Notes: generated by a model not told the origin, from the letters alone. Shown: positions 217 through 25,739, counted from the stretch's first letter. The stretch: DNA of 25,845 nt from Paramicrosporidium saccamoebae KSL3 (GCA_002794465.1 MTSL01000191.1:1-25845), one strand, 5' to 3'. Translations and numbers: made by a program.

Positions 217-1025
217 TTACGAGTCTTGGTGTGTTCGATAAAATTCTTGCAGATTGTACTTTTTAAACGCATGATATGAAGGTAAAATGCTGATCCCACA
301 CATTCCCTTGAAAACTTGGACCATGATGACAAAATCAGGCTTTTCTAGATCAACCTTGTGCTTTGGTCCAACAATGTCGGCCATAAGATCTATCACAGTC
401 CTTTTGTCAAATTGATTACTTAGCCGAGATTCAACAATGACGGCATATGTTCTTCGCGGTCCGTCAGTAGTATGGAATGTAGGGCTAATCAATGATGACG
501 ATTCCCTTCTAAGGTCTTCAATTGATGCCTTGAATATACGGGATAGCGGAATTAATCTTTGACAAAACCTAAAATCACCAAAACCTTGGGGAGGATTTAC
601 CGTGCGGCATTCACAGCTCCTGTGTCAGTTTTCCGGAATAAACTTCCTATGAGACTGACTGGATCGCCGATACTGGGCAGGGTCTTGATGAACACCATAC
701 AGTTGAGCTCTCCCATGCCAATGGCCTGATACTGTCTGGTCGATGTATTCTTCAATTCGGCAACCTCCTTGGCAATCTCATCAGCAAAACTTGCTGGTGG
801 CGCGGCGCTATCTGCAGACTCGGCCAGAGGACTAGTTCCGAGCTCGTCCAGTGCTTTGTCCAGCAGCTGAGATATTTCAGAGGTGCATCGAGCCTCTTGA
901 TTCCGAGAGCATGTAACCATTACTCCCATCATTCCCGGACAAACATCAAAGCTCTAAATCATTAGAAGTAAACCATAGTCAACTTTTCCACGCGATCCCT
1001 TCCTAAAGCGACCATCCTTGCCCAT
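217..1025 (-). CDS. TAN1: THUMP-domain tRNA acetylation adaptor (Tan1/THUMPD1)
   Basis: Spliced model with introns 954-983 and 569-600 reads MGKDGRFRKGSRGK-SFDVCPGMMGVMVTC...AAR-FCQRLIP...HKVDLEKPDFVIMVQVFKGMCGISIL...KKYNL, which are typical Tan1/THUMPD1 motifs. The first exon is less certain (GTT donor). Confidence 0.88.
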
Positions 1026-1039
1026 CAGGTTAACCCTAT

Positions 1040-2119
1040 TTATTTATTCGTAACATTCGAATAGTAATCATGAAGATACCTGTAGATAAAATCCAATTGC
1101 TCCTAATAACATTAGTTGCCGACTAAAAGGGACGAATACAAAGGTCTCTACCATGTCATTTCTACAGTGTCGAAATTCAATAATCGTTTTCAAGACCGGA
1201 TCATCTGCAACATTATTATCAAACCCGTTGGACAAGAGTGAATGCAGGACACAAAAAGTCCCCGTTCTCCCGATCCCAGCACTAGACACACGCATGAGTA
1301 TTAGATAGGGTTTTACCTGCAATGAACTACAATGGGTACTGCAGCTTGGTTAATAAGCTCTGCCTCGCAACAACGGAGCAGACTGGTCATGATGTCAAAA
1401 GTTACGGGGACACCATGATCTGGCCAAGTCGTATAATGAATCTGTGTCACAACCCTCTCTTCATCATTTAGAGTCAACCTAAAACGGCGTTGGATCATAT
1501 CTCCCTCTACTAAATCCACTTCTTGCTCCAGCTCGACAACAATTCCCGCAAATGTCAAAGGATGTTCTTCCAAAGGCCAATACTGCTCACACTAATGTCA
1601 GCATCGTGATTTCGTTCTACTTTGCGTTTCTGGACTTCCACCAGCATAATAATCAGGTGAACATTTTGTTCCCAGATCATGTGCCAAAAATCTGCAAATG
1701 TCGATGGAATCGGTGCCTGTGATGCTATATACGAGGTGGCAACGCCCTCTATCTAAAATCAAGCTAAGTCTCGGCACCTTGGAACTACGTTCATATGAGA
1801 GGCGTTTATGTACTCGTCACTTCCTTGACTCCCCTTGTAACGGAGCCTCACGCGATGATGTTCGTCTACCCATGAGATTCGAGAATCAATTACAAGGAAT
1901 TCGGTGGAGGTATCTGTTCTTGTATCGATAAGTTTCGTTGAACCGCCGATATTCATCATCAGTCCAGGTTGGAATCGAGTGGGTACGGGACATTAATTCC
2001 TAGGTAGTGTAGTCTATAACAGGAGGTGATACTGCAGCCTTTTGATCAATAATTTGCCCAGGACTATTTTCCGCAGAGAAGACATTTTTCAGGAATTCTG
2101 GATAAAAAGAGTCGGGCAT
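1040..2119 (-). CDS. Classical non-receptor protein tyrosine phosphatase
   Basis: Six introns (2000-2032, 1866-1893, 1753-1788, 1592-1620, 1282-1316, 1103-1139) restore the PTP motifs in order: KNRY..IPYEHHRVRL, YINASHM, YIASQAP, DFWHMIWEQ, KCEQYWP, WPDHGVP, HCSAGIGRTG, MVETFEQLDFIY. Confidence 0.93.
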
Positions 2120-2133
2120 TTACTAGTACCAAC

Positions 2134-2154
2134 AATATATTTTTTAAATATATT
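2134..2154. promoter_or_regulatory. AT-rich TATA-like tract in the 69-bp divergent PTP/ATP synthase f spacer
   Basis: AATATATTTTTTAAATATATT lies between two head-to-head ATGs (2119 on -, 2189 on +). Function is inferred from position only. Confidence 0.4.
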
Positions 2155-2188
2155 CCCTCCAAAGTCCCCGTTGACACTCCGACTTACT

Positions 2189-2504
2189 ATGGTTCTCTCT
2201 GCCTCGCGTTTATTTTCCACAGAGCCGAATTATTTGAAACAAGAGATCCATGAACTCGGCAAGACCAAGGTAAGCGACTTGCCAAAGACTGGAGGACAAG
2301 TGAAGAAAATATCCCGTGGTCTGTGGACTCGTTACACTGAGCGTTTCTTTGTGCGCGGAGGCGGTAGTTTTATGCCAGTGTTTCATATCATGCTTGGGAT
2401 TGGCATTCTCGGCTACAGCTGGGAATATTCTCACCTGAGTAGAAAATTGCATTTATATTGATCGTGTAGAGCACCAGCGTGATCATCCCGAAGAAGCACA
2501 TTAG
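2189..2504 (+). CDS. ATP17: Mitochondrial F1Fo ATP synthase subunit f
   Basis: Reads MVLSASRLFSTE (presequence-like)...GLWTRYTERFF...PVFHIMLGIGILGYSWEYSHL, then intron 2439-2469, then KHQRDHPEEAH*. The C-terminal TM segment GY.xEY.HL(K/R)H matches subunit f. Confidence 0.8.
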
Positions 2505-2623
2505 CTACTGAATAAATGTCTCCCTGCATCCGCAATAGGTAGGAAGGATGCTGCAGAATTGCCCATCTCCGCACAGACAAATGATGAAAAGATAATAATT
2601 TTGTTTAGCATTAATTTGTCGGC

Positions 2624-5363
2624 ATGCTTACTCGCCACAAGAAGGAGGAAGAAAGCGGTAGTCGCCTTGTCCATGACAATCTTATTGTTTAGGAGAACTT
2701 GGAATATTCACCCATATCGACAAGGCACTTGTTATCCAGGATGCCAAAATATTCAATGAAACCCCATTGAAAACTGCGAAATGTGTCACCGTTTTGACTA
2801 AACTCCTCTACCTTCTCTACCAGGGAGAGAAGCTCACTGCCAAGGAAGCAACCAACGTGTTCTTTGCCGTCACAAAGGCCTTCCAATCAAAGGATGTATG
2901 GTCAGAATATCATGACTAATTGTGTAGCCCAATTTACGCCGCCTGATTTACTTGGTTATCAAGGAACTGGCCGGGACCGCTCAGGATGTCATTATGGTCA
3001 TTAGCAGTCTCACTCAGGATATGAACACTATGCCCGTTTTTAAAGCAAATGCTATTCGTACGTTGGGAACCGTTGTGGACTCTACAATGATATCAGGAGT
3101 GGAGCGTGTGATTAAGCAAGCCATTGGAGATAAAAGCTCAAGTGTTGCCAGCTCAGCATTGACAACCTCTATTCATTTCCATGGTGAAAATCGTGAAGCA
3201 GTGAAACGCTGGCTTCCTGAGGCACAAGCATCCCTACAAGCGGGCCATGGTAAAACGATTGCACAGTATCACGCTCTCGGCCTGCTCTATCTCATCAAGC
3301 AGAATGACCGAATGGCCTTGAGTAAGCTCGTCCAGCAGATTCAAACTCAATCCAACAACATGCTCGCCACATGTTTAAATCTTCGGATCTATGGATTTCT
3401 GCTCTCGCTAGACTCTTCCCTGAGTGCCACGCCGCTTGATCTGAAGCCGTTTTTGCGATTGAGAGGGAAGGGTGATATGGTTTCCCTTGAGGCAGCCCGC
3501 ATTATTTGCGAGTTCAATGACCTATATGCTGGAGATGTCGCTTTTGCTATTACAACTCTCCAAATGTTCCTGAGTTCTGGCCGACCTTTGCTGCGCTTTT
3601 CTGCCATCCGTGCTTTGAATGACTTTGCTAATGTCGCACGTGAGCATGTTGCCGTTTGTAATGTGGACATTGAGGGACTGGTGGCCGATTCGAATCGTAA
3701 TGTTGCTACCTTGGCCATCACTACCCTTCTAAAGACCGGCAATGAGGCCAGTGTAGATCGTCTCATCAATCAAATCATGGGTTACGTTTCCGAGATTTCC
3801 GACGAGTTCAAGGTCATTGTAGTTGATGCTGTGCGCTCCTTGGGTCTCAAGTTCCCGAACAAGCACAAGACCATGCTGCAGTTCCTGGGAAACGTCTTAC
3901 GTGAAGAGGGTGGACTTGAGTACAAGGAAGCTACCGTGGATGCCATCTGCCAGCTGTTGGCAAATATTCCGAGCGCACGAGAGCCAGCTTTGGCACATCT
4001 CTGTGAATTCATCGAAGACTGCGAGTATCCCAAGTTGACAGCACAGATCCTGCATCTTTTGGGAGAAGAAGGTCCCCGTAGTGAGAATCCGGCAAAGCTG
4101 ATCCGCTACATTTATAACCGCCTCATCCTTGAGGACGCAGTCGTTCGTGTTGCTGCGGTCGGCGCCCTTACAAAACTTGCCGCCACCTGTCATAATCTCA
4201 AGGATGGAATTGTTTCCATTCTCAAACGCTGCCTGGATGACGATGAAGACGATGTCCGCGATCGTGCAGCCGTCAGCATCCGTGGATTGGAAGACGAAAA
4301 TATCGCTCAGGAATATTTCCTCATCGACGAAGCCTATGATTTGGCAGCCTTGGAGGCTCAGCTGATGGACTATGTTAACCAATCCGAGGCTGCATTCTCG
4401 GTTCGTCCATTTGACATTGACTCGGTGCCCACTGTGCCTAAAGCAACCTTGTTTGAAAAGGCTCGGGCCGAAATGATTGCTGCTACAGCTGCTACTAACG
4501 AGGTTGCATCTAATAAGCTGAACGCAGGGTCACCCACTGGAGTGGATCAAGTTGTTCCAGCCAACATTGCCACCCGGATCGATGAGATGCCTCAGTTTGC
4601 CGAATTTGGCCCCCTCTATTCCACCTCGGCTGCTGTTCCATTGACAGATGCTGAGACTGAATATGTTGTGAATGCTCGCAAACACATCTTTGCGGAACAT
4701 CTTGTCATTGAATTTGAATGTCGTAACACTGTGCGTGAATTGGTCCTGGAAAACGTGCAAGTTCAAGTTCAAGTGCAATCAGCCTCTCATCTTGAGCCTC
4801 TTTTCGCTCTCCCAATCTCCAAGCTATCATACGACGAGCCAGAATGCTCATACGTCGCTTTCAAGTCCAGCTCTAGTGAGCGCCCCGAAGCTACCTTTGT
4901 ATGCTCTCTTCGTTTCACAGCAATTGAAGTTGATCCCAACACTGGAAGCCGTATTGGACGCGGCAGCACCGACGAGTATCCAGTCGAGTCCATTGAACTC
5001 GGCTTGAGCGATTATATTCGATACCGGGATGTACAAGACTTTGGTCAAGACTGGAACACTCTGGAAAATGAACATATTGAAACTCTGGAATTGCCCTCGA
5101 TGCGTAGCATCTCCGAAGCTGTCAAGGCTGTGGCAGAGTTGGTAGGTGTCCGCGCTCATCGCGGGTCTGACCGCGTTGATCTTAGCACAAACACGCATTC
5201 TCTCCTGATGAATGGTTCCATTTATATGAGGGGACATTCGCTGGGTGCTAATTTTGCGATCCGAGCGAGATTTGCCGAGGGTACTTCGGGGATTGCAGTG
5301 GAACTTGCGGTTCGTTCCGTTGACCCTGATGCTACCATGGCTATTATTAGCGCTGTTTGCTAA
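2624..5363 (+). CDS. SEC21: Coatomer subunit gamma (gamma-COP)
   Basis: Introns 2658-2692 and 2896-2927 join MLTRHKKEEESGELGIF...KAFQSKD-PNLRRLIYLVIKEL to the 803-aa ORF, which contains EFKVIVVDAVRSL, HLCEFIEDCEY, YIYNRLILE and ETEYVV..KHIF. Confidence 0.97.
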
Positions 5364-5564
5364 TCGAAGGAGAATTATAAAAGTAAACTATTACGAGGTT
5401 GACATCATGTTGTAAAGAGGGGGATTAGTGGTATATTCAGCAAGTTATGTCGTTGGCGAGACGTTCAATTGTGGATCGATCTGACTACAAGTCTGCAATA
5501 CGCGAGTCCTGGTCCTTCTTTATGGACTAACTGCGGCGCGGCCAGATTATTTGCTGTATTACGA

Positions 5565-5584
5565 ATGGATGGATGGATGGGTGG
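5565..5584. repeat. Short (ATGG)n microsatellite
   Basis: ATGGATGGATGGATGGGTGG in the SEC21-MCMBP spacer. A similar tract lies in the EF-2 intron (about 25715-25730). Confidence 0.7.
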
Positions 5585-5658
5585 AGTATTATAGCCTCAT
5601 CACTACTAAAGAATGTGAGATTGGTCGTTTGCTTCACACTAACTCGTAACTATAGTGA

Positions 5659-7119
5659 TTATATTTTTGCAAGAATGAGAGCTCGTTTAAAATGCTCCAT
5701 AGACATTTGATTACATCCACAGCTTGCTGAAATCAGTCGAGAGATATTTAGCACGCGACTAAGATGATTCGGGTCAGCAGCGTCACCATTCCCGGCTTTG
5801 CGCTGATCAACATAAAACTCTTCAATCTCTCTGGCAGTCTCCTCAGTAATATCCACATCGATAGCTCGGCAATACTGAATGTATCCAGCAAAGGCTGCTG
5901 GTGCATCAGTGGGATCTAATTTGATAAAGTTGGTAGCGACAATAAAATCTTCAATTGGCAAGATACTTTTTCCGTGAGAAAGAGAGATAATTGGCACATT
6001 TGTGTGCACCGAAATGGGCTGGCCTCCAAAGTCGTATTGCACAGTCTGATGCATTATCATGTCGATAAGGGCCTGCATGTTCTTGGAGGCTCGTTCGGTG
6101 AGCTTCCCAGGAACAAGAGCACGCTCATCAATAATCACCAATGTCCCTGAGGGAATCTGCAAGACGCCCTGCTCCAGGACTCCCGATTCGTAATTCATCT
6201 TGGATGCAAATTCACCGGTTTCGAGCTCCTGGGGAGACAATTTGATCAACTTAGAGTAGGGAACAAGTTCTGTCAAGAATTCCACGAGACCTTCATATTT
6301 AGCATCATGTTGCAATCTAATGTTCAGCGGATAGTGCCCAATCAAAAGAGATGTTAAAAGTCCTGGCGACCTGCTCGAAATGCGAGACATTAAGGCTAGC
6401 AGCAACTTTTCAGATCCACTAGAATCGAATCCGCACGAGGTGAAAAATTTCAAGCAGGCATCTTTCGTGACACTGGCATCTCTCGTGGCGCTGGCGTCCC
6501 AAGAACTTGGAATCCGGCGAGGGACCATTTGCAGAGCATGTATTGTCGGCAAATTGTGAGGATATTCAGCATCCAACTCAAATTTGCCTTGAAAAATTCC
6601 ATAAATATCAACAAGTTCATTGACTTTGGTGTCAGCGCCGTCATACAAGAACACGAGATGCTTGGACGTTTGGATCTCGTCTCGACATGGGGGGGACGAA
6701 ACTACTACCATTTTGCGTCCAGTAATTCCGGAAAATTGCACAATTCCGTGTTCCAACTCGCCTTCCAACGAGAAGAGACCTGTTGGGCGGACATTTCCAT
6801 CGCTGTCAAGTCCTAATGGGACGAAGAACTGGTCACCAACAGAGTCGTGCTGAATCATGGCTGTCAATCGAACCAACTGCCCATCCTGAAGCTGTGGCTC
6901 TGTAGTAGATAACTGAGGGATTCTATCGAGGTCGTGCTCTGGAAAGCACTCGACAAATGACCTGGTAAGTAGTTCTAGGATATCACTGAATTGCGAGTTT
7001 AGGTCATGTCCACTTGACGCTAATAATCAGTCACATGGCTCACAAATGGTACAGATAACAGAGTCTAAGCACTTTTTGGGAAACTTAATATATTCGTCTT
7101 GCTCGAATTGAAGCGTCAT
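5659..7119 (-). CDS. MCMBP: Mini-chromosome maintenance complex-binding protein (MCMBP/Mcb1)
   Basis: Intron 7020-7052 links MTLQFEQ... to RIPQL...LVRLTAMIQ and to the degenerate MCM AAA+ block MNYESGVLEQGVLQIPSGTLVIIDE...QTVQYDF...LSHGKSILP. Confidence 0.88.
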
Positions 7120-7244
7120 GGCGACTGGTTATAAGACGAAATTGGTTAGAGGCCTGGTCATAAGGAGTTTAGATTAGTATATATGCTTACTGCTTACCCA
7201 CCGTGCTTATGGCACATATTAATGTTCGCAACTCTGAATGCACA

Positions 7245-8834
7245 ATGATATTGCTCCTCTTGGCATCCTTATTCCATGTGGGTAGGACGATCAAGATTTC
7301 TGCAAGCCCGAGACAGCTGCACTTTCGTCTGTGCAATGATGAAAAGCCTTTGATCTTGGCCTCTCTCGAGTATAATGACGAAGAAAATGTGGTCATAATG
7401 GCGCGACTCTTGGGCTGTAAAGAAATCCCTGTAACGGCATACTATGCTGCTTATGATGAAGAATCAGAGCAGTTTCTTGCAGAATTGCTAGCCGATCGGC
7501 TACTGGAACATGTCTTTCCGCATCCGGAATTGCATCCATACTTTTTTCCAGTGAGCCAGCTCGCCAAAAATACCTTTCTTCGAAGCTTTATTCTTGAAAA
7601 TTTTGACAGATATTCTCCTGGTGTTGTATATTTAGGGAAGGATGCAAAAAATATCTATGATGACGAACAACTCAGATATCTGCTTAGTCCAGTTGTGCGA
7701 TTCCCAAATTTACTAGGTGATGTCGAGGCTGGAAGGATGGCCTGGAAGCTAGGGCTCGACAGCGGCTGGGAAGTTGACTGTTCAGACACGCTAGATAAGC
7801 TGATAGCAAAGATCGAGCAAAACTGTGATATCAATCTTTTGCTCATTGGTGCACTGAGTATCCCCTTTGAAACTCTGGCTAGCCACATTGACCGAACATT
7901 GGAAAACGAGACCTTGTCCATTCTTTCCAATTTCCTGTCGGAGGGCACATGGATGAATGCGTACCAATCTTTCCTTAGCATTATAAAGGAACGAACCAGT
8001 AATGGTTCTGAAGCGAGAGTGGCATTGTGGCATGGACGTTTGTTGTTGGGAGCACTAGCTGTGCATCCAGAGCAGTCACACGTCTTAAAACGGTTTTTTA
8101 TTGAGTACTTTACCTCGTACGATCTAAGACTAATTCCTCCGTATATTGCATCAAAAATTGTTGAACAATTTCGAGAAACAAAGAGACTGAATTTTACAGA
8201 GGAGTTAGACCCTGATTTGATCGAGCTGTTGTCGTCAATAGAGGATCTCTTTTCTACAAAGGAAGGATTCTGGGGCGGAGTAAGTCAATATGCCAAACGT
8301 TTTAGCCTTGCCCTTGAGGGAGGGCGCCAGTTTGATTTCCCGACATATGCATGTGACACGAATGCGGCTGTTCGTTTCTTTGCCGAAGGGAAGATTGGTA
8401 GAGGCGAAAAGGTATTATTCCATGGATTTCCCACAAGACCGCTGCTATTGCAGCACTCTGACGGAAAAATATCAAAGTGTCATGATATGGTCCTATTTCT
8501 AGAAACTATGACTGACCTAGTGTTCATCGAGTCAGGAGTGTTTACTTTGGTGACAGATGGGCTCGCGATCGCATCTCGTGACGGAGCTCAGAATGCTGAT
8601 TTCTGGGTCACCGTCGGCCGTCTGCTAATATATAATCTTATTTACCGCAGCAAAATTGGGGTGAGGCTAAGTGGAAACTTTTGGCGTGGCATCTATAATG
8701 GAATGAATCCATTGCAAAATGCCATGTCAGGAAACATGCCGCGCAATCCAATGAGAGTCATCGCATCTGAATTATATGCATTGGAATTTACATACTACTT
8801 TCCAAAGCACATAATGTTACCTGTAGCCCCTTAA
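7245..8834 (+). CDS. Intronless orphan protein, probably secreted, with a C-terminal HECT N-lobe-like segment
   Basis: About 1.6 kb of open frame. The ATG at 7245 gives a hydrophobic N-terminus, MILLLLASLFHVG; an alternative in-frame ATG lies at 7209. The C-terminal DFWVTVGRLLIYNLIYRSKIGVRLSGNFWRGIY resembles a HECT N-lobe helix. The CDS is likely real, but the function is unknown. Confidence 0.7.
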   Translation: MILLLLASLFHVGRTIKISASPRQLHFRLCNDEKPLILASLEYNDEENVVIMARLLGCKEIPVTAYYAAYDEESEQFLAELLADRLLEHVFPHPELHPYFFPVSQLAKNTFLRSFILENFDRYSPGVVYLGKDAKNIYDDEQLRYLLSPVVRFPNLLGDVEAGRMAWKLGLDSGWEVDCSDTLDKLIAKIEQNCDINLLLIGALSIPFETLASHIDRTLENETLSILSNFLSEGTWMNAYQSFLSIIKERTSNGSEARVALWHGRLLLGALAVHPEQSHVLKRFFIEYFTSYDLRLIPPYIASKIVEQFRETKRLNFTEELDPDLIELLSSIEDLFSTKEGFWGGVSQYAKRFSLALEGGRQFDFPTYACDTNAAVRFFAEGKIGRGEKVLFHGFPTRPLLLQHSDGKISKCHDMVLFLETMTDLVFIESGVFTLVTDGLAIASRDGAQNADFWVTVGRLLIYNLIYRSKIGVRLSGNFWRGIYNGMNPLQNAMSGNMPRNPMRVIASELYALEFTYYFPKHIMLPVAP

Positions 8835-8887
8835 GAGCGACAATAGCCATGGTCAATTAAAGCACGATAAACTATGTTGTATAATAT

Positions 8888-10195: not shown

Positions 10196-10673
10196 TAATG
10201 ATCTCAGTAGTGGCTGCGCTGTAACGATTATATCGTGTTATAAATGAGCAAAGTTGATTGGCCAAAAAACTATCTGCCAATCGCTACATTTCTAGCATGC
10301 AAATCATTGGTTCTTTCCCCCCATATTGAGATAGGTGCGAGGAGCCTAATGCCCGGCTTATAATTATAGTACGTTAAGTAAATCCATCTGCCATCATGGA
10401 TTGAGTTTTAAAGTAATTGCACGATGGCCATGATACTTGTCAGAGATGATATCGGCACTATAAACTTTGAAAAAGTAAGCGGCCCAATATAATAGGTTGT
10501 ACTGTGTCGGGTGCCGATTCGAAATGCATTTCAGCAGGATTACATTGTAATTTTTATGCACTCAAATCAATTTAAAATGTTTTCTAACAGTATCATATTG
10601 TCGTTACTATCGTGCAAGCCCGATTCAAGGCATCTTCCAACAGGACCATTAAGACTCCCATAATACAAAGTTA

Positions 10674-11138
10674 CTAAAAGTCTTCATCCTCATCGTCGAG
10701 GGCCGGGCGTCTTTGGAATTTTATCTTAGACTCTTGGGATTGCTGCTGTACATTAATGTTTTCTAAAAGCCCCACCAAGTCATTTTCTGTCAACTGGCCG
10801 GTAGGAGAGCTTCCACGCAGCCGACCGCTTCGGGCAGCATCGATTATCAAGTCTTCCAAGGCCCTACCACGTTCCGGCTTTACCATAGTAATGCGCGACA
10901 CTATATTTATCATACAATCACCAACTTGAACCATACATCTCTGACGAGCATCACTAGAAAGTATGCGTAACAGGATCTCGCTTCGCATTTGCTCATGCTT
11001 CTCTTGCTCGGCCATTTGCTTCCTCCCCGCATCAGGTCCCTAAAAATTTAGTAATAAACGATTAATAGTAACTGCTTGCGCTTGCATTTCTGCCAACCGC
11101 CGAGCACGAATAGCCGCCAACTCGGAATCCTCTGCCAT
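10674..11138 (-). CDS. PDCD5: Programmed cell death protein 5 family (PDCD5/Sdd2)
   Basis: Introns 11040-11072 and 10901-10936 give MAEDSELAAIRARRLAEMQ...ILSSDARQRLSRITMVKPERGRALEDLII...ENDLVGLLE...KIKFQRRPALDDEDEDF. Confidence 0.93.
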
Positions 11139-11375: not shown

Positions 11376-11475
11376 TGTGACGTAGAGGTAGAGGATTGAT
11401 TAGTTGGGTATGTGACGTAGAGGCAGAGGGTTGATTAGTTGGGTATGTGACGTAGAGGCAGAGGGTTGATTAGTT
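11376..11475. repeat. 35-bp tandem repeat, about 2.9 copies
   Basis: Unit TGTGACGTAGAGGCAGAGGGTTGATTAGTTGGGTA starts at 11376, 11411 and 11446. Copy 1 has 2 substitutions and copy 3 is truncated at 30 nt. Confidence 0.95.
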
Positions 11476-13233: not shown

Positions 13234-13295
13234 TGGCCCCAGCCGAATAGTAGGGTGCCAGGGTCAAGGTGGCTTCTATTCCAAACGCAACTTTT

Positions 13296-14978
13296 ATGAC
13301 CATCACACAGGCGTCTCCACGGTCTGCAGAGTCTGGTACTATGCGTCACCTAGACAGCTTTAAGGAACTCAAGGTTCTTTACGAGGCACCTCTTACACAG
13401 CTACTGGACATTTTTCCTCATTGGACGGAGGAAGACCTAGTGGCCGCCTTGTCAGATCTGAAGGGTGACCTTGAGATGGTAATCGACCGTATCTCCGAAG
13501 GTATCCACATCTTCAAATAATATCTAACGTACGTAGGTCACATAAAGCCTTGGGCTAAAAGCGGAAAGAAGCCGGTCAAAAGAGACGTTAGTACTGAGCC
13601 CTTTATCCGTAGAAATTATCGCAAGAATCCTCCCGTGGAACGGCAAGTCCTAAATAAGGAACCCATCCGGCCTGAAAGACCTCACGATAAGCAGCAAGCA
13701 AGCGCTAATACAGTAGAAATTGTAACACGGCCGTCCGAGGCTAACGCCGCTCCAGAGCCAGCTACTTCCAATAATGTTCTGGAGAATTCCAAGACGACAG
13801 AAGCCAAGTGTGCCGCAAACGTAAAGAGATACACCAGCATCAACTCTGAAAATGCAAAGACCAAGGCTATTGATCCCAAGGGGGTGCGTCATATGCAAAC
13901 CAAAAAAGACAGCGTCGAATTATGTGAGGGCTCTCTTGTACATGAAGAAAAACTTGCTCATTTTGTGTCTTCTATCGTGGAGGAGGAGGCTGTTCATGCT
14001 GCACCAATAGTGCAGATGCCAAAGACCCTGTCTTCGAGAATCTCCAGTAGCATCGCCGTCCAGCAGCCCGTCGTTGTGCTGCCGCTAAAGGCAACCGTTC
14101 GGCCTGGTCTGTCTGTCAACTTTGGTGCTGCTAACCAAAGCTCACTTGGTGGACAGACACAAATCGTCCGAACCCTTGACAATTCATTGAATGCTATGAA
14201 TCACATTGCCTCTCCTGAAACTGCCACTCCCAGATACACTTCAACTAGTGTCGAGGCGACCCTGCTTTCTAGCCCAAGAAATGAGTCTTCCGATGTCACA
14301 GGTGCCCGGCGTAGCCAGCCCATCCAAAGACCTGTGCAGTCTGCAAATCGCGACAACTATATGACTCCTCCTCCTGGATTAGCGAGCGAGATCAGCCCTC
14401 TGGAAACTCATTTTGTGTCTCATGGGTCATCCTATACTAATGCCAAGGCCGCCTCTCCGGTTAACCGCTACTCACAATATCCGTCTGGTGGATCACACTA
14501 TTCGCACGACGACATTGCTGATGCATCATATTACTCTCAAGGCTCACGCCCTCATTATCAACAGTCTTTGACACAGTCGGTGCCGCCTGCAACCAACTTT
14601 TCTCGTTCGATGGATTTTAACAAGCCTTCAGTAGAAAATGGTCGCCCAGCACAGCCATTCGGGGCCCCTTGGAATACTTATGCCAATCCTCAGGGTCAAC
14701 ACGGGAACTATTACCCGAACACCCATTATTCACAGCATGTTTACCCTGAAGCCTCGGCCTACCATCAGCAGCCCCATTACTCAGTGCCGCCCGCCAATCG
14801 CTACTCTAATCAACCACCCAACACTTTGTACAATTCTACAAATCCCTACGGCGCTGGCGGTTTCTACGGTGGAGTAAATGACCAGAACTTTGGTAACCAG
14901 CAGGCGCCACGTAGTGGAACGCAGCCAGCTTCTCGCCAAGTGTTCTCGGGCACATTTCCCCAGACAAAGAATCTGTAG
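13296..14978 (+). CDS. CUE-domain protein with a low-complexity C-terminus (Def1/UBAP2-like)
   Basis: LTQLLDIFPHWTEEDLVAALSDLKGDLEMVIDRISEG, intron 13501-13536, then HIKPW. This matches the Def1-type CUE pattern and is followed by a S/P/Q/N/Y-rich tail. Confidence 0.75.
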
Positions 14979-15054
14979 GACATAAAATGGTGACGCACTT
15001 TTATATTTCTGCAATTGCACAGTTAAGTTTTTCTAAATACACAGCCCGTTGCAG

Positions 15055-15856
15055 TCATCTACAATTGCAATCACAGCCCGGGCAACGCAGGTTGGGATTT
15101 GCTGTCAAGATACGGTCAAAGCAGTCCTGGTGTGCAATATACGAGCAACTATCGTTGATACAGGTAAAGCTCTATGATGCAAACACTAGCAGAGTGTCCT
15201 ACCTTGGTAGTAACTAGATTTTTACAAATTCCACAGTCAAAAAATAAGCCTTCCTCTCGCAAATAACCCTCAAGCTCGGCCGTTGTTCTTGGACCGATCA
15301 TCAGTTTTCCCGATGTGCTACACAAGATGATCAACTATGACTGAATTACGTTCGCACAAGCCAATAATCAGCAACAAGTGAATCCATCAAGTCCTCACAT
15401 TGCTTTTTTGTCAGCTCGCCGCTAGCTTGAGTCATGGCATCCAGAATTGATGCTCGATACTGGGAAGAGTCCGAGATGAATCGCAACTGAATATTCATTA
15501 GATGACAGGCCGTAGAAGTCTACCAGACGCTTAAAGCACTCTACTTGTTCAAGCGTGTATTGTGTGGCAAGCTGGGCAATATTATCGGCGAGCGTGTTGT
15601 AAATTGCCCAGACGTGAGAGCTACTCTCAAAGGAGTACATCTTTCGAAGTTCTATATGGTATGGCCGGAGGGTGTCTCGTATGAGGTTGAATAAAGCGAG
15701 AAATTCATCCGGAGACAAATCATCTAAAAAAGTGAGTCGCTCCAATGGCCACATACTTTCGTCAAGAACGGCACGAGCAAAGTTTAGCGCCCTTTCGTCA
15801 CTCACAAGCCTTTCTTTAAATAGCCATTGGACCAGCGTGGGAATGGCAGCTTCCAT
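15055..15856 (-). CDS. NSE1: SMC5/6 complex non-SMC element 1 (winged helix plus RING-like domain)
   Basis: Introns 15487-15523, 15318-15349 and 15172-15202 give ...LTKKQCEDLMDSLVADYWL...IGPRTTAELEGYL...CGIC...TCINDSC...HQDC...CPGC, the Nse1 C4HC3 finger. Confidence 0.9.
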
Positions 15857-15872
15857 CTGACCCTTGACGCCA

Positions 15873-16856: not shown

Positions 16857-16917
16857 AAATGGCTGCTATGGCACAAATTGTACGTAGATTTATATTCTGG
16901 TAGTGCGTTTTGCGGAA

Positions 16918-17973: not shown

Positions 17974-17990
17974 ATATTATAAATATATTT
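17974..17990. promoter_or_regulatory. TATA-like tract in the 41-bp divergent J-protein/LSC1 spacer
   Basis: ATATTATAAATATATTT lies directly between head-to-head ATGs (17973 on -, 18015 on +). Function is inferred from position only. Confidence 0.4.
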
Positions 17991-18014
17991 CAGGTTAACT
18001 GCATATTAACATCC

Positions 18015-19116
18015 ATGAATTTAGTCGTGCGTGCCACATGTCCCATATTAATCTGCTAGTCCCGCGCTTTAATTACTGCTCGCCTGCGAACCTATTCCAG
18101 TCGTGCTGGAAAACTACCATATGAAGAGACTGTACGTAATTTGGCAATTGGGAAGGGCACAAAGGTCATCTGCCAAGGCTTTACCGGAAAACAGGTACTA
18201 CCAATTACGCAGCGGTGAAACTTGCCATTAGGGAACGTTTCACTCCAGCCAGGCAATTGAGTATGGCACCAATATGGTCGGCGGAGTAACTCCGGGAAAA
18301 GGAGGCCAAACGCATCTCGGCCTTCCAGTTTTCAATTCAGTGTCCGACGCTAAAGCAGCCGTTAATCCAGATGCGACTGTGATTTATGTCCCCCCTCCAC
18401 TGGCAGCCGCCGCAATATTAGAGGCAGTGAAATGTGAGATCCCCCTAATTGTATGCATCACGGAAGGGATTCCACAGCACGATATGGTAAAGGTCACAAG
18501 GGCTCTTCACGAACAAGGCAAATCTCGTCTTCTTGGGCCTAATTGTCCTGGTATTATTCGTCCAGGTGAGTGTAAAATAGGCATCATGCCTGGTCATATT
18601 CATCGAAAAGGCTCAATAGGAATTGTTTCGCGCTCTGGTACTCTCACCTATGAGGCTGTTGCACAGACAACTGCAGCTGGTCTGGGTCAAAGTCTTTGTG
18701 TCGGTATTGGTGGAGACCCGTTCAACGGGACCAATTTTGTTGACTGCCTTAAACTATTTTTGCAAGATCCTGAGACGGAAGGTATAAAGACGTCATTGCA
18801 ATACTGATATATAGGAATTGTTCTTATAGGAGAAATCGGAGGCTCTGCAGAGGAAGAAGCGGCCGATTTCCTACGCAAGCATAACTTGACCCGTGATCGA
18901 CCAAAGCCCGTTGTTTCATTTATTGCAGGACAAACTGCTCCGCCGGGTAGAAGAATGGGGCACGCAGGAGCAATTATCTCTGGTGGCAAAGGAACAGCTA
19001 CCGATAAGATCAACGCTCTCGAAAGCGCCGGAGTGCTAGTCACGCATTCACCAGCAAAGATCGGCGCGACGATGCTCGAAGCAATGAATATTGCCAAGAA
19101 AAGATTCCGGAACTAG
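18015..19116 (+). CDS. LSC1: Succinyl-CoA ligase subunit alpha, mitochondrial
   Basis: Introns 18027-18059, 18195-18231 and 18782-18814 give [18 protein letters not shown]...[16 protein letters not shown]...GPNCPGII...[11 protein letters not shown]...GIGGDPF...GEIGG...RRMGHAGA, with the phospho-His motif intact. Confidence 0.97.
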
Positions 19117-19717
19117 TAATGAGACTCTTTTATAATACACTGTAGAGTTCCCAGTGTGACAGCTCGGGAGATCTGTGATTTTTAAATCTAAAGTCAACCA
19201 TTTCCGTGCGATAACTAACTACAGCCAGTACAGTTGAGAAGAAAATGTATGCTCTACTACTACTTTTAAATGCGACTCGGCTCGCACAATATCGATTTAA
19301 GGGAATGTGCGTTTATAAAAAGATGCACGATCATAGTCTCCCGTCGCTTACAGTTCATGTGCACAACACCAATAATTTTTCAATATTCGGTGCAATAGTG
19401 ATTGTGTTCGTTTTAAGTGCCGTAAAATATTCTGCAAATTAATAGAAATACAGGACCCTGTCTGACTGAATAATTATTGACGGCAATTAGTGTCTCTAGA
19501 ACTCAGTATAGTATAGCTAATTCTGGGCTGTTTTTTAGTGGATAATTTCGATGGCCGCTCGATTTTTCGACTACCGAGCTGAAAGGCCGTTATGATCGTA
19601 ACGCATGTGTACAATATGTAATATAATTACTTCAGTTGATAATACTACTCTCCAGAGGTGCCACAGGCCCCTTTGCTAGTACTTGTGTGCAGACGGGGGT
19701 GCCGAATAATATCCACC

Positions 19718-20503
19718 ATGGCGGTATGCGCCGTACTGAGCTGTTGATTCTTAGGAAGTCAGATTGTACACAAGTAATCAAGAACGAGAGTCATTCGAAA
19801 CTATGGCTGACTTGTATTCAATTTTCATCGCTACCGAGAACTTGGAAAAAGCTTATATTCGCGATACAGTGAGTCATGATGAGTAGGTCTTCGATGTTAT
19901 TCCTCAGCTTATAGATACACACAAGCTTGTGGAAAACTAATCGCACAGTTCAAGACTAGTGTCAATGTGTTAGGGTCCGGCTTTGATGTCAAAGATTTCA
20001 TCAAGCGTTATGACGTATAGTTGCATTCGGGCGAGTAATCTGTATTTAGATTCGCTGTCCAGCGGCTGTTCACAGACTAGTTGAAGTTGGTGTTCCTGCC
20101 ACTACAGAACATACCGCCGCGGCAGATGGAAGTGGAAGTTTAACAAAGCACGTCGCCGAAACAGTCCAGGTATAATTGGGCATTGCTACTGAACCATACT
20201 AGCACTTCATTACGCTATTAGATTCCTTAAAGTTAAATTTAGTGGCGGTGGATCAGATACACCCTCTTCTTGCAGATCTCATGCAGAGTCTTGCACAAGT
20301 CAAGGTTATCCCATCAACATATCAAGGAAAAGCCAGGATTTTGGAGTGGTACTCTAACTCTATTATTTTCACTTTGAAGGTTGAAAAAATTAAACCAGAT
20401 GAAGGCATCGGATGAATTGGCTACTGATGAGGTTCGCCAACTATCATTCGATCTTGAAAGTTCTTTGACAGAATTTCACCGAGTGCTAGCAACAACAAAA
20501 TAG
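19718..20503 (+). CDS. VPS28: ESCRT-I subunit Vps28
   Basis: Not in the ORF track. Five introns (19724-19754, 19883-19914, 20015-20049, 20170-20202, 20349-20379) give MAEVRLY...ADLYSIFIATENLEKAYIRD...EYTQACGKLIAQFK...CPAAVHRLVEVGVPAT...VAETVQHFITLLDSLKL...DQIHPLLADL...WLKKLNQMKASDEL...RQLSFDLE. Confidence 0.95.
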
Positions 20504-20526
20504 TAGAATTTATTCAATTTTTTTTA

Positions 20527-21666
<1,140 letters not shown>

Positions 21667-21705
21667 TCACAGTCTCATCTCTCCGTTTATAGACTTATTA
21701 GAAAA

Positions 21706-21950
21706 CTATTTTTTCTGTAAAAGGTCTTTCTTGAACTCGGCTTCCATGATATCTCGTTCTTTCTGTTGCTTTTCAAGACGGTTTTGCACCTCGCGCCGCC
21801 TTTCTGGATCCAACTTCTACAGCGATCTATAGTTGTATAAGGGTGTACCTGAAGAAATTCGCTCTTGCTAGGGGAATTTACACTGACATAAAGACAGCCA
21901 GCCACCGCTAGCACAGTGGATGCCAGGAGCAATTTTCCAACATTTGGCAT
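21706..21950 (-). CDS. Small single-TM protein, probable complex III assembly factor (Cbp4-like)
   Basis: Intron 21817-21848 gives MPNVGKLLLASTVLAVAGCLYVSVNSPSKSEFLQ-KLDPERRREVQNRLEKQQKER.... The pattern TM + (T/S)P(T/S)..E.L..L.PE.R + charged helix resembles Cbp4. Confidence 0.55.
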
Positions 21951-22067
21951 TAATATTCAGGCCTGGTCTTCTAAAGAGTTCTATTGTGCGATTATGACAA
22001 AATTCATTTACTGAGGGCCAAACCGTGTGACAAGATTCAGTTATTGGGTCAACCCGTGTGAGAAAGT

Positions 22068-23102
22068 TCATTTATTGAGGGCCAATCTATGTGTCAAAAT
22101 CCATTTGCTAAGCTCAACAATCTGGTTGTCATTAAGTGAGCCTGGTCGAGCATCTCGAGGTACAACTTCTGGAAAAGAATCCATTGGAAAATTTTGTTGT
22201 CGAAAGGATGACGAAACAATTTTTCGAGGGTTCAAAAATATTTCTTGCACAGCTCGCTGTAATTCCGTGAATGGTAGCGAAAATGCCGGCTTTTTCACAA
22301 ATCTAACCACTGCTGCATCAACTTTGGGCCGCGGTGTAAACGAATTGCTAGGTACTGTGATGCACATCTCTGTCTCACAATAATGCTGTGCGAGAACAGA
22401 TAATCTGCACCTGTTCGAGTGGCCTTCTTTGGCAACAATTCGCTACACGTTACCCTTGAATTAAATATATACCTCGCCGACTTCCTTTTGGAACATGAGC
22501 AGAAATTCTACAAATTGACAGGAATGTAATAATTGCCCAAAAAGCGTATCCGGAGGATTCGAGATTGCCTGAAGAAGTTTCAAGAGGATAATCGAAGCCA
22601 CCCCAAAGGGGAGATTACCCACGATCTGTATCCTCTTTGGCATAACATCAAAGTAAGAGCCGGGCAACTGAAGAATATCCATGGCATCGCTAAAAGATAC
22701 TCTCAGCTGATCGGGACGAGAGTCCTGCAACTGCTACAAAATTGCTGAGACGCACTGATGATGATTACATTCAAAAACGGACGGAATCGCTCATCCTTTT
22801 CAATCACAACTAGTCGTTTCGGGTTCTGTAGTAAGATCTCACGGGTCAGTCCGCCAGGGCCTGATAAATGAGCGAGTATTTGGATATAATGATACCAGGT
22901 CCGATTTCTATAACCAAATTTTCTGTCAGTGGCTGCTGAAGATACCGAACTATCCTACCTTGTTGAAAGAAAATTAATCAACTGCACTCATACTTAATAC
23001 AGACGGATTTAGAATAAAGTTCTGGCTTAAATTCTTCTTTGCATTCAGACCATAAATGGTGAGCAACTGTTGCAAGGACGGCAGAGGGGGAAGGGACGGC
23101 AT
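22068..23102 (-). CDS. Mitochondrial rRNA adenine dimethyltransferase of the TFB1M/RsmA type
   Basis: Introns 22959-22993, 22861-22895, 22734-22768 and 22443-22472 give MPSLPPLPSLQQLL...AKKNLSQNFIL...VIEIGPGPGGLT...IEKDERF...VGNLPF...MFQKEVGERIVA...RLSVLAQ...FTPRPKVDAAVV. Confidence 0.9.
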
Positions 23103-23170
23103 TACAAGATAATCGCGTTAATAAAATGGTTCTCTTTATTTTATGAGACTGCCACCAGACAATTGCAGGA

Positions 23171-25739
23171 TTACAGCTTGTCTAGGTAGCGATCAAGAGG
23201 AGGAACGTCCTCAGAGAGACCCTTACGCTTGCGAGTAGCACGGACGACGATTCCAGTCTTTGAAGTGGGATCGAGAGCGTTGCCTTGCATAAGCTGCCAA
23301 TGATCAAAGACACACTGAGGGAAGGCCTGGCCAGAAGTATGAGAGCGCAAGTCAGCAGTGAAGCCGAAAGACTCATTTACAGGCAAGTAAGCCTTGATAT
23401 TGAACATGGGCGTACCAGGACGCTGCTCCTCCTGGAAGACGTGACCACGGCGGCGATTGAGCACACCATAGATACCGCCCATAGCACGATCGGGGCACTG
23501 AATCTCAACAAGATAGACAGGCTCGAACAGGGCAGGGTCAGACAGAAGCTGGGAAGCATAGACAACTGAGCGGGCGGCGGGGAGGATTTGACCACCACCA
23601 CGATGGATGGCGTCAGCGTGCAGAGTGACGTCAACAAGATTGAAGCGGCAACCACGGAGATTCTCACCAGCCAAGACACCTTCAGCAGTAGCAAGTTGGA
23701 AAGCTCCACAGAGAGAATCCTTGATTTCAGTCAAGTATTGAACAGCCTTGGTAGTATCAACCAGGACATTGGGTCCAACGCTATGAGGACCAAAGGCCCA
23801 GATCTTACGGGCGCTGTCCACATCCCAACCGTATGTCTCATTAAGATAACGAGCACGAGCCTTGATTTCATCCTTGGAAGAAACCTTGCCAGTTTCAATA
23901 TCCTTGATCATGTCCTCTTCCATGGGCTGAGCACTCATGAAGATACGGTTGTGGTTGTTGGGAGACTTGGCTAGAGCAACCTGAGACGACTCTGAGCGCA
24001 TCGTTTCACAATACTGCACAACGGGGTCAGAGGTGCGGAGAGGTACTCCGGCGTGATCCTCCTCAAGATCCTTGAGACAAATTTCCAAATGGAGCTCACC
24101 GGCACCGGCAACAATGTGCTCACCAGTCTCGGCAGTGGAGCATTGAACACAGGGATCAGACTTGGAAAGACGCTTCAGACCTTCAACAAGCTTGGGGAGA
24201 TCGTTGGGGTTCTTGACTTCAACGGCAACACGCACGACGGGAGAGACAGAGAACTTCATGACCTTCAAGTTATGGGCGACTTCGCTGGTGGTAATGGTGC
24301 CAGATTTCACAAGGAACTGATCAACACCGACCAAACCGACAATGTTACCGGCGGGGCAATCTTCAATGGGCTCGACGAAACGTCCCATCATAAGAACGGT
24401 ACGCTGGATGCTCTTAACGAACAAGTCGTCCTTCTTTCCGGGCTCATAGTTAGGTCCTTGGATGCGAACCTTCTGCCCAGACTTGCAGGTACCAGAGAAG
24501 ACACGACCGAAAGCATAGAAGCGACCCTTATCGGAAGTCGGCACCATCTTGGAGACGTACAACATGAGGGGTCCATTGGGATTGCAGTCGCGGATACCAA
24601 TGGCACACTCATCGTCGATGGGACCTTCATAGAGGGTCTCAGAGCGATACTTTTGAGCAGTCACGGGGGACGGCAAATGGATGGCGAACATTTCCAAGAG
24701 AGCATCAGCAGCAGGGAGGAAGCGACGCATAACCAGCTTCATCAGATCCTTTCCACGGAGCTCATTCTCCTCATGCGTCAGCTTAATATTAAGCTTCTGG
24801 ATCATGTCGGTATATTTCTCAGTGTCATCAGCAAGGATAGACTTGAAAAGCTTGTAAATAGGGTCCAAGACGAACATGTTGAAACCGCGCTGATTTACGG
24901 AGCCATCATCGTTGGATTGATTGGTGGTCCACTTGCGGGTGTTGGCGTTGTAGAAGTTATCACCCCAGAGACGCTCCATCATCTTTGAGCGGTCGACACC
25001 AAACTTCTTGGCATAACGGCAGGCGAACTGATGGAGAGTGAATGCCCATCCATGGAGACCAGATCCGAAGGCAATGTTACCGAGCTCTGGAGAGACTTGG
25101 CAGTTACCAATGGCCTCATCGTAGTAAGTGGCAATGATGACGTTGACAGTCTCAATGACACGCAAGAAGGAAGTGTAGAGGGATTCGGGATCCAACTGCA
25201 GCTCAAGAAGAGCACGATCGACCTTGTTGACAATGAGCACGGGCTTGATACGCTCAGTGAGGGCCTGGCGGAGCACAGTCTCAGTTTGCACACAGACACC
25301 CTCCACACAGTCGACGACAACGAGAGCACCGTCAGTGACACGGAGAGCAGCAGTAACCTCAGACGAGAAATCAACGTGCCCGGGAGAATCAATCAGATTC
25401 ACCAAGAACTGATTACCCTTAGTCTCCTGCTTGACGTCCTCCATAATATCGGGATTAAGCTCAAAGTACATGGAAATGGCAGTGGACTTGATGGTAATGC
25501 AGCGCTCTTGCTCGTCAGCACGAGTATCTGTGAAGCGAGCACCACCACCCTTATCAGAAGCGATGATACCAGCTTTCTGGACCAGAGAGTCGGTCAACGT
25601 CGACTTTCCATGGTCGACATGGGCGATGACGGACATGTTACGGATGTTAGTCGGTACGTCCATGAGTTCACGGACTTGATCGATGGTAAAATTGACCTAT
25701 GGAATTAGAATCATTGGGATGGATGGATGAGCATACCAT
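23171..25739 (-). CDS. EFT1: Translation elongation factor 2
   Basis: ATG (25737-25739), a 40-nt intron (25697-25736), then [48 protein letters not shown], and the diphthamide loop [13 protein letters not shown]. Confidence 0.99.

Follow-up and report, generated by a model that had tools for sequence, protein, structure and literature searches.

The Microsporidia are the sister group of the Rozellomycota and include the closest relatives of the amoeba parasite Paramicrosporidium saccamoebae for which intron analyses have been published. One of these, Encephalitozoon cuniculi, contains about 37 introns of 22–76 nt with strict motifs, most of them in ribosomal-protein genes and close to the 5′ end (PMC3629993). 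Ultra-short introns whose 5′ splice site retains only GTA are already known in ciliates, myxozoans and dicyemids. Among the ciliates, introns of Stentor measure 15–16 nt. Those of Paramecium are 20–33 nt in length (cited in PMC3629993), and the introns of myxozoans and dicyemids have median lengths of 22–27 nt, with the 5′ splice site cut from agGTaagt to GTa and the polypyrimidine tract lost (PMC13644364). Introns of about 30 nt without strong or conserved motifs were reported for the S23 gene of Rozella allomycis by Whelan et al. (PMC6349667), and a survey of fungal introns, which did not include P. saccamoebae, gave 2.5 introns per kb for Rozella. The genome of P. saccamoebae KSL3 (MTSL00000000, a 7.3-Mb assembly), placed in the Rozellomycota by the NCBI taxonomy, was described by Quandt et al. 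2017; introns go unmentioned throughout that paper and its supplements, a 2026 study curating P. saccamoebae GTPase genes notes only that introns occur, and we came across no account of how long the introns of this species are or which signals they have. Here we describe the introns in bases 1–25845 of KSL3 contig MTSL01000191.1 (GCA_002794465.1; this 25,845 nt stretch is called the window, and its coordinates are those of the record), which are very probably ordinary U2-type GT-AG introns that have shrunk almost to the smallest size a spliceosome can handle, in a strongly compacted genome, and which would be recognised by intron definition via three weak signals.

We rebuilt 19 genes in the 25.8 kb of the window, which has a G+C content of approximately 45% and a coding share of 83%, and found introns in 15 of them at a density of 1.72 per kb of coding sequence (CDS). 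All 37 introns (positions 569–25736, Table 1) are of the GT-AG type and in the sense orientation relative to their host genes, which are present on both strands, and their lengths are confined to 28–40 nt (mean 33.3, standard deviation 2.5, n = 37). The donor is GTA in 34/37 introns (92% A at +3), while the acceptor is TAG in 31/37 (84% T at −3), CAG in four and AAG in two. A G at +5 was present in 9/37 introns (24%), which is background when compared to the 20% G in introns, and the positions +4 to +6 are near intron composition, with essentially no information. The mean match to the canonical CAG/GTAAGT was 4.8 of 9 positions, and the first 36 introns identified have 27 distinct donor hexamers, a weak bias on the exonic side of the donor (A at −2 in 19/36, G at −1 in 16/36) and T on the acceptor side at −3 (31/36), −5 (21/36) and −7 (19/36). 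A first-pass annotation of the window had listed 37 introns of 28–40 nt with the same donor and acceptor counts and with +5 G at background level, and all of this, including the outer coordinates 569 and 25736, was reproduced by our independent models. It had further placed the three non-GTA donors (GTTGAC, GTTACT and GTGCGT) in first introns, which is correct, though with 15/37 introns being the first of their gene the probability that all three are first introns by chance is approximately 0.07, and their placement is therefore not taken as a finding. Outside the window, the adjacent histone-fold gene past an assembly gap has another three introns (33, 34 and 33 nt), all GTA...TAG, with two of the three junctions located within a single CBFD_NFYB_HMF match.

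A further signal was detected close to the acceptor, as the motif YTRAY is present within the final 24 nt of 20/37 introns, compared with 8.0 ± 2.7 in composition-matched shuffles of the intron interiors (maximum 17 in 500 shuffles) and 4.9 ± 2.1 in exon segments of equal length. The less stringent TRAY was found in 26/37 introns, against an expectation of 13.4 ± 2.9. In 13 of the 20 introns with YTRAY, the putative branch A is located 6–9 nt from the 3′ end and 21–31 nt from the donor, and we infer that YTRAY may be used as branch site. There is no polypyrimidine tract, with only 6–9 nt separating the putative branch A from the AG, and only a modest excess of T was observed. The ACTAAC sequence of yeast and Microsporidia was present in none of the 37 introns. 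The earlier description of these introns as 'reduced to GTA...TAG' thus holds for the GTA donor and the mostly TAG acceptor, but missed YTRAY in 20/37 introns; the introns contain three weak signals, (A)G/GTA, YTRAY and TAG, within a tightly limited length.

The gene models were built without the first-pass list, by joining stop-to-stop open reading frame (ORF) pieces from six frames via all frame-compatible GT/GC-AG pairs, choosing among the candidates by homology and the spacing of conserved motifs, and then testing the spliced products, with the search mostly restricted to introns of ≤70 nt. The initial round of this procedure gave 36 introns; the probable intron 1 of the CLP1/NOL9-like gene came to light when the window was scanned for GTA...NAG elements that contain a branch-like motif. 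Codon bias is weak, and a dynamic-programming gene finder based on codon usage (GT-AG only) chose a few long false introns and was replaced by junction enumeration and homology. The number of GTA-N-TAG pairs of 28–40 nt (120 in the window, of which 28 are real introns, versus approximately 190 in shuffles) is uninformative, because coding sequence avoids TAG. Approximately 18 junctions were placed by residue-level alignment to PDB, chytrid or other homologues, using RPTP-alpha for the tyrosine phosphatase (PTP), the human GDP-fucose synthase, mouse TFB1M, the pig enzyme for succinyl-CoA ligase alpha (SCSa), and seven chytrid, aphelid and other fungal homologues for introns 2–5 of VPS28; 15 of these junctions are gap-free, while in the other three a small indel lies at the splice point or close to it. 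All 18 alignment-fixed introns start with GTA and only 2/18 have +5 G, and hence the pattern is not a product of consensus picking. Unbroken Pfam matches span the junctions in PDCD5, ATP synthase f, Nse1 (introns 1 and 3), COPG (intron 2) and CBP4, and the full-length VPS28 model gave 97–100% homologue coverage with up to 61% identity among the matches listed. The least constrained calls are intron 1 of the CLP1/NOL9-like gene and the N-terminal introns of PTP, VPS28, SCSa, COPG, MCMBP and the CUE gene, placed by frame restoration and parsimony only.

Several points weigh against reading these elements as a uniform set of miniature introns with a branch-like signal. YTRAY is absent from 17/37 introns, which contain only looser variants (CTCAT, GTGAT, GTAAC etc.). 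Most junctions allow 2–4 formal GT-AG alternatives within 30 nt, with a single solution in only four, and the exact boundaries of about half of the introns are placed by parsimony instead of residue-level alignment. The junctions are predictions from genomic sequence. Poly(A) RNA-seq was reported for strain KSL3 (73 M read pairs; Quandt et al. 2017), and none of the ten spliced protein models looked up was found in a collection of 15 billion proteins that includes assemblies of public sequencing runs. Finally, our sample is one 28-kb locus, and a 120-bp intron is reported in the S23 gene of P. saccamoebae (PMC6349667), so that the 28–40 nt range is not absolute genome-wide.

Retention of 36 of the 37 introns would lead to a premature stop, with the stop codon lying within the intron in 26 of these, so that mis-splicing is predicted to give truncated products, or targets of nonsense-mediated decay if that pathway is active. 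In five of the six phase-2 introns, translation into GTA[AG] would meet TAA or TAG at once, and the terminal TAG is itself an in-frame stop in five introns (four of them phase-0 and divisible by three in length). An in-frame stop is present in 10/11 introns of multiple-of-three length, in a sample which is biased by ORF-based detection. The sole exception with regard to retention stops is PDCD5 intron 2, which if retained would insert 12 residues into a conserved domain; stop-free introns of multiple-of-three length escape ORF-based detection, and this one was found only via homology. Since such introns are invisible, the true number of introns may exceed 37 and long ORFs that appear intronless may hide more of them, and given this ascertainment bias and the small sample we make no claim on depletion of multiple-of-three introns. 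The built-in stops recall the translational surveillance proposed for Paramecium introns, in a sample that is small and biased.

The elements have GT...AG ends in sense orientation (37/37), restore conserved reading frames upon removal and in VPS28 occupy orthologous positions, as is found for U2-type introns, and at this one locus they share with the ultra-short introns of ciliates, myxozoans, dicyemids and nucleomorphs the narrow lengths below about 40 nt, the GTA-reduced donor and the absence of a polypyrimidine tract. We propose that splicing would follow intron definition, with each intron treated as one unit. At the 5′ site, only about five positions would be available for pairing with U1/U6, namely a weak exonic A-G and then G-U-A; U2 would be engaged by a degenerate YURAY branch site about 21–31 nt past the donor and mostly 6–9 nt before the acceptor; and the acceptor would be the first YAG after the branch site, usually UAG, with no real polypyrimidine tract. 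The spread of 28–40 nt most likely results from deletion bias and selection for compactness acting against a steric lower limit, and a dedicated length-measuring device would be unneeded. The 'length-defined splicing' proposed in the first-pass annotation goes beyond the observations, as the narrow spread is equally explained by pile-up at the minimum size.

The canonical U1 5′ end is ACUUACCU, and the canonical U6 box is ACAGAGA. Recognition of the 5′ splice site may have been remodelled by alterations of the U1 5′ end and/or the U6 box, or by loss of U1 components as suspected for Encephalitozoon, with the introns being defined by length and not by sequence, and although this is the alternative that survives best, we consider it unlikely. 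The background level of +5 G, the uninformative positions +4 to +6, the mean match of 4.8 of 9 positions to the canonical donor and the standard deviation in length of 2.5 nt would all fit such remodelling, as would the loss of >50 spliceosomal components in E. cuniculi, where U1 small nuclear RNA (snRNA) was not found (PMC3629993). No snRNA or any other Rfam family was detected in the window (Rfam search, gathering threshold and E≤1). Against remodelling, the presence of a branch-site-like signal speaks against recognition by length only, and pile-up at minimal size accounts for the narrow range without measuring. Ciliates also splice GTA...TAG introns with a standard set of snRNAs. Likewise, myxozoans are reported to have conventional U2 snRNA and U2AF despite their GTa-only donors (PMC13644364), and remodelling is therefore not required. 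It is similarly doubtful that splicing in Paramicrosporidium, and perhaps in the whole Rozellomycota/aphelid grade, no longer reads +4 to +6, for example through a changed or missing U1 5′ end, an altered contact of the U6 box or the loss of proteins associated with U1, and that the intron-dense P. saccamoebae represents an intermediate stage before the extreme reduction of the microsporidian spliceosome.

Somewhat less probable again is an effect of the locus or of ascertainment, with broad intron lengths and ordinary fungal GTRNGT donors elsewhere in the genome. Only about 28 kb was sampled in a species for which the 120-bp S23 intron is reported, and detection by ORF junctions favours short introns, with candidates mostly limited to ≤70 nt; however, 37/37 introns of the window and 3/3 of the next gene fit the pattern, the 16 genes concerned being unrelated and distributed over both strands, full-length products are obtained with tiny introns alone for all genes that have a conserved domain, and the 83% coding share leaves no room for long introns in the window. 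That the elements are no introns but arose by frameshift errors in sequencing or assembly or by pseudogene decay, or are cut out of the somatic genome in the manner of internal eliminated sequences (IESs), has next to no probability left and appears effectively refuted by the junction analysis, for while the deposited annotation does not contain these introns and the ten spliced models are absent from the protein collection, all 37 have sense GT...AG ends with 92% A at +3 and 84% T at −3, their removal restores gap-free alignments including catalytic motifs, two match fungal introns in position and phase, and random frameshifts or decay would not yield insertions of 28–40 nt with defined ends.

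The elements do not fit three known classes. The IESs of ciliates are TA-bounded, have a terminal inverted repeat and are oriented independently of the gene strand; here, the ends G-TA...TA-G occur only in sense orientation, with 37/37 following the gene strand, and no germline/soma dimorphism is known in this relative of fungi. U12-type introns need an RTATCCTT donor and a TCCTTAAC branch near the 3′ end, and only the intron of the CUE gene starts with GTATCC, followed by AC instead of TT. This intron has a branch-like element TCTAAC at 9 nt from the 3′ end, no other U12 candidate was present among the introns, and its U12-like start is probably a coincidence. The microsporidian type (criteria of PMC3629993) does not match a set with 1.7 introns per kb of CDS, located in 15/19 genes and at all positions along them, with 27 donor hexamers among the first 36 introns and no ACTAAC.

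The likening of these introns to those of ciliates in the first-pass annotation is apt, as both have narrow lengths near the minimum, a GTA-only donor, a mostly TAG acceptor, no polypyrimidine tract and usually a stop upon retention; they differ in that ciliates belong to the Alveolata and P. saccamoebae to the fungus-related Rozellomycota, where introns are somewhat longer (mode approximately 33 nt) and the genetic code is standard. Myxozoans and dicyemids share with P. saccamoebae a compact parasite genome, the GTa donor, the absence of a polypyrimidine tract and a weak A-rich or branch-like signal near the 3′ AG, but are animals, and their introns are shorter by 5–10 nt. Dicyema and the non-myxobolid myxozoans retain nothing but AG at the 3′ site, whereas P. 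saccamoebae has 84% T at −3 and a recognisable YTRAY in about half of the introns found here. E. cuniculi also has very short GT-AG introns with the branch site near the 3′ end, but P. saccamoebae is intron-dense (1.7 per kb CDS), with introns all along housekeeping genes and degenerate donors. Splice sites are degenerate in intron-rich genomes and strict in intron-poor genomes such as that of E. cuniculi (PMC3629993), and the high intron density and weak donors of P. saccamoebae fit this rule.

The age of the introns was investigated using VPS28 only, by exact protein-to-genome threading of the exon structures of Batrachochytrium dendrobatidis and Amoeboaphelidium occidentale. Two of the five P. 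saccamoebae VPS28 introns are common with Batrachochytrium, one of them also with the aphelid: intron 2 (32 nt, phase 2, codon before YT.AC) has the position and phase of a 175-nt Batrachochytrium and a 46-nt Amoeboaphelidium intron, and intron 3, a phase-0 intron of 35 nt that precedes the CPAA motif, those of a 124-nt Batrachochytrium intron, which indicates that these are ancestral introns that shrank. The Batrachochytrium VPS28 introns (1638–2529 of the compared locus) are likewise GT-AG with TAG acceptors, but are 64–175 nt long with +5 G in 4/4, unlike P. saccamoebae, where the two orthologous introns measure 32 and 35 nt and the intron set as a whole does not conserve +5 G. In Amoeboaphelidium the VPS28 introns are 36 nt (GTAACT...TTATAG, 1565–1600 of the compared locus) and 46 nt (GTAAAG...CGATAG, 1743–1788), with +5 G in neither, which hints that the pattern of small introns and weak donors reaches the aphelids. 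No Rozella VPS28 was present among the 120 homologues listed. Rozella and the aphelids belong to the same broad clade and have short introns with weak motifs, with numbers limited to two introns from each; Rozella differs in being AT-rich. Short, weakly signalled introns may thus predate the Paramicrosporidium lineage, and the earlier suggestion that they evolved independently in this lineage is unproven given the ancestral VPS28 positions, the aphelid introns of 36 and 46 nt and the Rozella introns of approximately 30 nt. Convergence is found only relative to ciliates, myxozoans and dicyemids.

The genes on the minus strand of the window encode a THUMPD1/Tan1-like protein, PTP, MCM-binding protein (MCMBP), a glycosyltransferase-like membrane protein, PDCD5, a CLP1/NOL9-like kinase, Nse1, a DnaJ membrane protein (intron-free DnaJ-domain ORF of 351 aa), GDP-fucose synthase, a CBP4-like protein, TFB1M and elongation factor 2 (EF2), and those on the plus strand ATP synthase subunit f, coatomer gamma (COPG), a 541-aa protein, a CUE protein, a mitochondrial carrier, SCSa and VPS28. 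The ORF of the 541-aa protein (7209–8834) is intron-free, without Pfam match, and identical to the deposited model. Among public contigs, the DnaJ ORF matches MTSL01000191.1 alone. No tRNA was found in the window. The genes are very closely spaced: the PTP stop codon ends at 1040 with the ATG of the neighbouring gene on the same strand at 1025, 16 bp lie between the divergent start codons of Nse1 (minus strand, 15856) and of the mitochondrial carrier gene (plus strand, 15873), 68 nt (23102–23171) separate the EF2 stop from the TFB1M ATG, and another very tight spacing is found at 13233–13341. With such spacing, transcripts must overlap or untranslated regions (UTRs) be nearly absent. Two tandem repeats, one intergenic between PDCD5 and the CLP1/NOL9-like gene (11376–11475, 35-nt unit × 2.9, 96% identity) and one extending from the TFB1M 3′ end into the spacer before CBP4 (21995–22106, 33-nt unit × 3.5, 72%), may be promoter- or terminator-region elements. 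Between SCSa and VPS28, 600 bp (19117–19717) have no assigned gene and contain two intron-like elements on the plus strand, at 19511–19538 (GTATAG...TTTTAG) and 19618–19655 (GTAATA...CTCCAG, with a TTGAT branch motif), which could represent a VPS28 5′-UTR intron or a small unannotated gene. Smaller stretches without assigned gene are located at 10196–10673 and 5364–5658. The window ends in a C-run (25836–25845, minus strand) adjoining a run of Ns (assembly gap) in the contig, and the region upstream of EF2 is therefore incomplete.

Table 1. Predicted introns of the P. saccamoebae KSL3 window and the basis for each junction; a slash marks the splice junction.
Intron	Position	Strand	Length (nt)	Ends	Junction
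THUMPD1/Tan1-like intron 2	569–600	−	32	GTAAAT...TTTTAG	Joins long ORFs in different frames; sole viable donor GTAAAT; THUMP domain in spliced protein
THUMPD1/Tan1-like intron 1	954–983	−	30	GTTGAC...ATTTAG	Single viable GT-AG solution; start exon MGKDGRFRKGSRGK to main ORF
PTP intron 6	1103–1139	−	37	GTATTC...TATTAG	MVETF/EQLDFIY vs RPTP-alpha MVQTLEQYEF, gap-free; Pfam Y_phosphatase match of PTP is one stretch, 55–283
PTP intron 5	1282–1316	−	35	GTAAAA...GTCTAG	Catalytic motif VHC/S/AGIGRTGTF restored, gap-free
PTP intron 4	1592–1620	−	29	GTAGAA...CATTAG	...KRK/CEQYWP restored; 3-residue deletion vs RPTP-alpha in variable loop; shortest GTA...TAG of ten formal alternatives
PTP intron 3	1753–1788	−	36	GTAGTT...TTTTAG	YINASHMN/IEGVATSYIASQAP aligned gap-free; a 33-nt alternative would give one extra residue
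PTP intron 2	1866–1893	−	28	GTAATT...GGGTAG	Single viable solution; NRYLHRIP/Y/EHHRVRL restored gap-free
PTP intron 1	2000–2032	−	33	GTATCA...ACCTAG	Takes out in-frame TAG between start exon and exon 2; region unconstrained by homology; 21-nt GTT alternative
ATP synthase subunit f intron 1	2439–2469	+	31	GTAGAA...GTGTAG	Pfam F1F0-ATPsyn_F 29–84 vs 37–92/92; spliced C-terminus reaches final profile position
COPG intron 1	2658–2692	+	35	GTAGTC...GTTTAG	MLTRHKKEEES to GELGIFTHIDKALVIQDAKIFNETP; 32-nt GTCGCC alternative possible
COPG intron 2	2896–2927	+	32	GTATGG...GTGTAG	FQSKD/PNLRRLIYL within one Adaptin_N stretch, 24–527
MCMBP intron 1	7020–7052	−	33	GTACCA...TATTAG	Start exon to 455-codon ORF, frame shift; N-terminus unconstrained by homology
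PDCD5 intron 2	10901–10936	−	36	GTATGG...ATATAG	Homology only; multiple of three, stop-free; removal gives unbroken dsDNA_bind match, 10–121 vs 1–106/106
PDCD5 intron 1	11040–11072	−	33	GTTACT...TTTTAG	...RRLAEMQAQA to GPDAGRK..., within dsDNA_bind stretch
CLP1/NOL9 (Grc3)-like kinase intron 2	12892–12925	−	34	GTATGA...GTATAG	Joins 141- and 430-codon ORFs; one GTA donor, GTATGA
CLP1/NOL9-like probable intron 1	13160–13191	−	32	GTACAC...CTTCAG	Start MEPVFQNVCLKPGE/RRYV...; weakest call; marginal Pfam Cupin_NOL9 support
CUE-domain gene intron 1	13501–13536	+	36	GTATCC...ACGTAG	Takes out stop between exon 1 (CUE 18–54) and 485-codon ORF; 48-nt alternative with identical acceptor
Nse1 intron 3	15172–15202	−	31	GTAGGA...TCATAG	Within complete zf-RING-like match, 185–228 vs 1–43/43
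Nse1 intron 2	15318–15349	−	32	GTAATT...GTGTAG	Frame restored between ORF pieces; moderate homology support
Nse1 intron 1	15487–15523	−	37	GTAGAC...ATTCAG	Within SMC_Nse1 stretch, 22–129
SCSa intron 1	18027–18059	+	33	GTGCGT...TGCTAG	MNLV start exon to presequence; 36-nt GTCGTG alternative; GTA donor in neither option
SCSa intron 2	18195–18231	+	37	GTACTA...CATTAG	Gap-free vs pig enzyme
SCSa intron 3	18782–18814	+	33	GTATAA...ATATAG	DPETE/G/IVLIGEIGG gap-free vs pig enzyme
VPS28 intron 1	19724–19754	+	31	GTATGC...TCTTAG	MA/EVRLY...; N-terminus loosely constrained
VPS28 intron 2	19883–19914	+	32	GTAGGT...TTATAG	Gap-free at junction; phase 2
VPS28 intron 3	20015–20049	+	35	GTATAG...ATTTAG	Gap-free at junction; phase 0
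VPS28 intron 4	20170–20202	+	33	GTATAA...TACTAG	VAETVQ/HFITLL gap-free; invariant flanking residues
VPS28 intron 5	20349–20379	+	31	GTACTC...TTGAAG	AAG acceptor; W/L are invariant W167 and L168; gap-free
GDP-L-fucose synthase intron 3	20689–20722	−	34	GTAATC...GTGTAG	GGEIQ/ junction gap-free vs human enzyme
GDP-L-fucose synthase intron 2	20935–20965	−	31	GTATAA...TTTTAG	LLAKK/A/GEKTF; one-residue loop indel beside junction vs human
GDP-L-fucose synthase intron 1	21103–21136	−	34	GTAACA...ACACAG	DVQNQ/CYYEQYG gap-free
CBP4-like small gene intron 1	21817–21848	−	32	GTACAC...CTGTAG	70-aa product; Pfam CBP4 4–59 vs 7–63 across junction
TFB1M (mitochondrial rRNA dimethylase) intron 4	22443–22472	−	30	GTATAT...GTGTAG	FQKEVGE/RIVAKEG gap-free vs mouse
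TFB1M intron 3	22734–22768	−	35	GTAATC...TTGTAG	RFRPFLN/QLQDSRP gap-free
TFB1M intron 2	22861–22895	−	35	GTATCA...TATCAG	Single viable solution; S-adenosylmethionine (SAM)-binding motif EIGP/G/PGGLTR restored
TFB1M intron 1	22959–22993	−	35	GTATGA...AACAAG	AAG acceptor; SQNFILNPSVL/S/RIVRY gap-free at junction
EF2 intron 1	25697–25736	−	40	GTATGC...CCATAG	Right after ATG; single viable solution; followed by 841-codon ORF

The deposited annotation was made using MAKER defaults, with Augustus trained on Rhizopus oryzae, and has 13 models versus the 19 genes found here, with most of the intron-containing genes modelled wrongly. In the window or just beyond it there are five fusions (THUMPD1 with PTP; ATP synthase f with COPG; the glycosyltransferase-like gene with PDCD5 and CLP1/NOL9; TFB1M with EF2; and the histone-fold gene with PEX13), and five genes are truncated, namely GDP-fucose synthase (163 versus 332 aa), VPS28 (80 versus 207 aa), Nse1 (123 versus 233 aa), MCMBP (399 versus 475 aa) and SCSa (297 versus 332 aa), while the CBP4-like gene is missing. 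Genes mis-modelled in this way are likely to affect the published gene counts and inferences of gene loss, and as the gene-loss calls for P. saccamoebae feed reconstructions of the origin of Microsporidia, the genome should be re-annotated with settings that admit very small introns.

The introns described here add a fungus-related lineage, sister to Microsporidia, to the short list of those with ultra-short introns and GTA-only donors, and the shrinkage of two VPS28 introns from >100 nt to approximately 33 nt represents miniaturisation of old introns, not gain. This lineage pairs a high intron density with tiny introns, whereas the introns of Microsporidia proper are few and strictly signalled, making it a useful comparison for the co-evolution of splice signals, intron number and spliceosome complexity during genome reduction.

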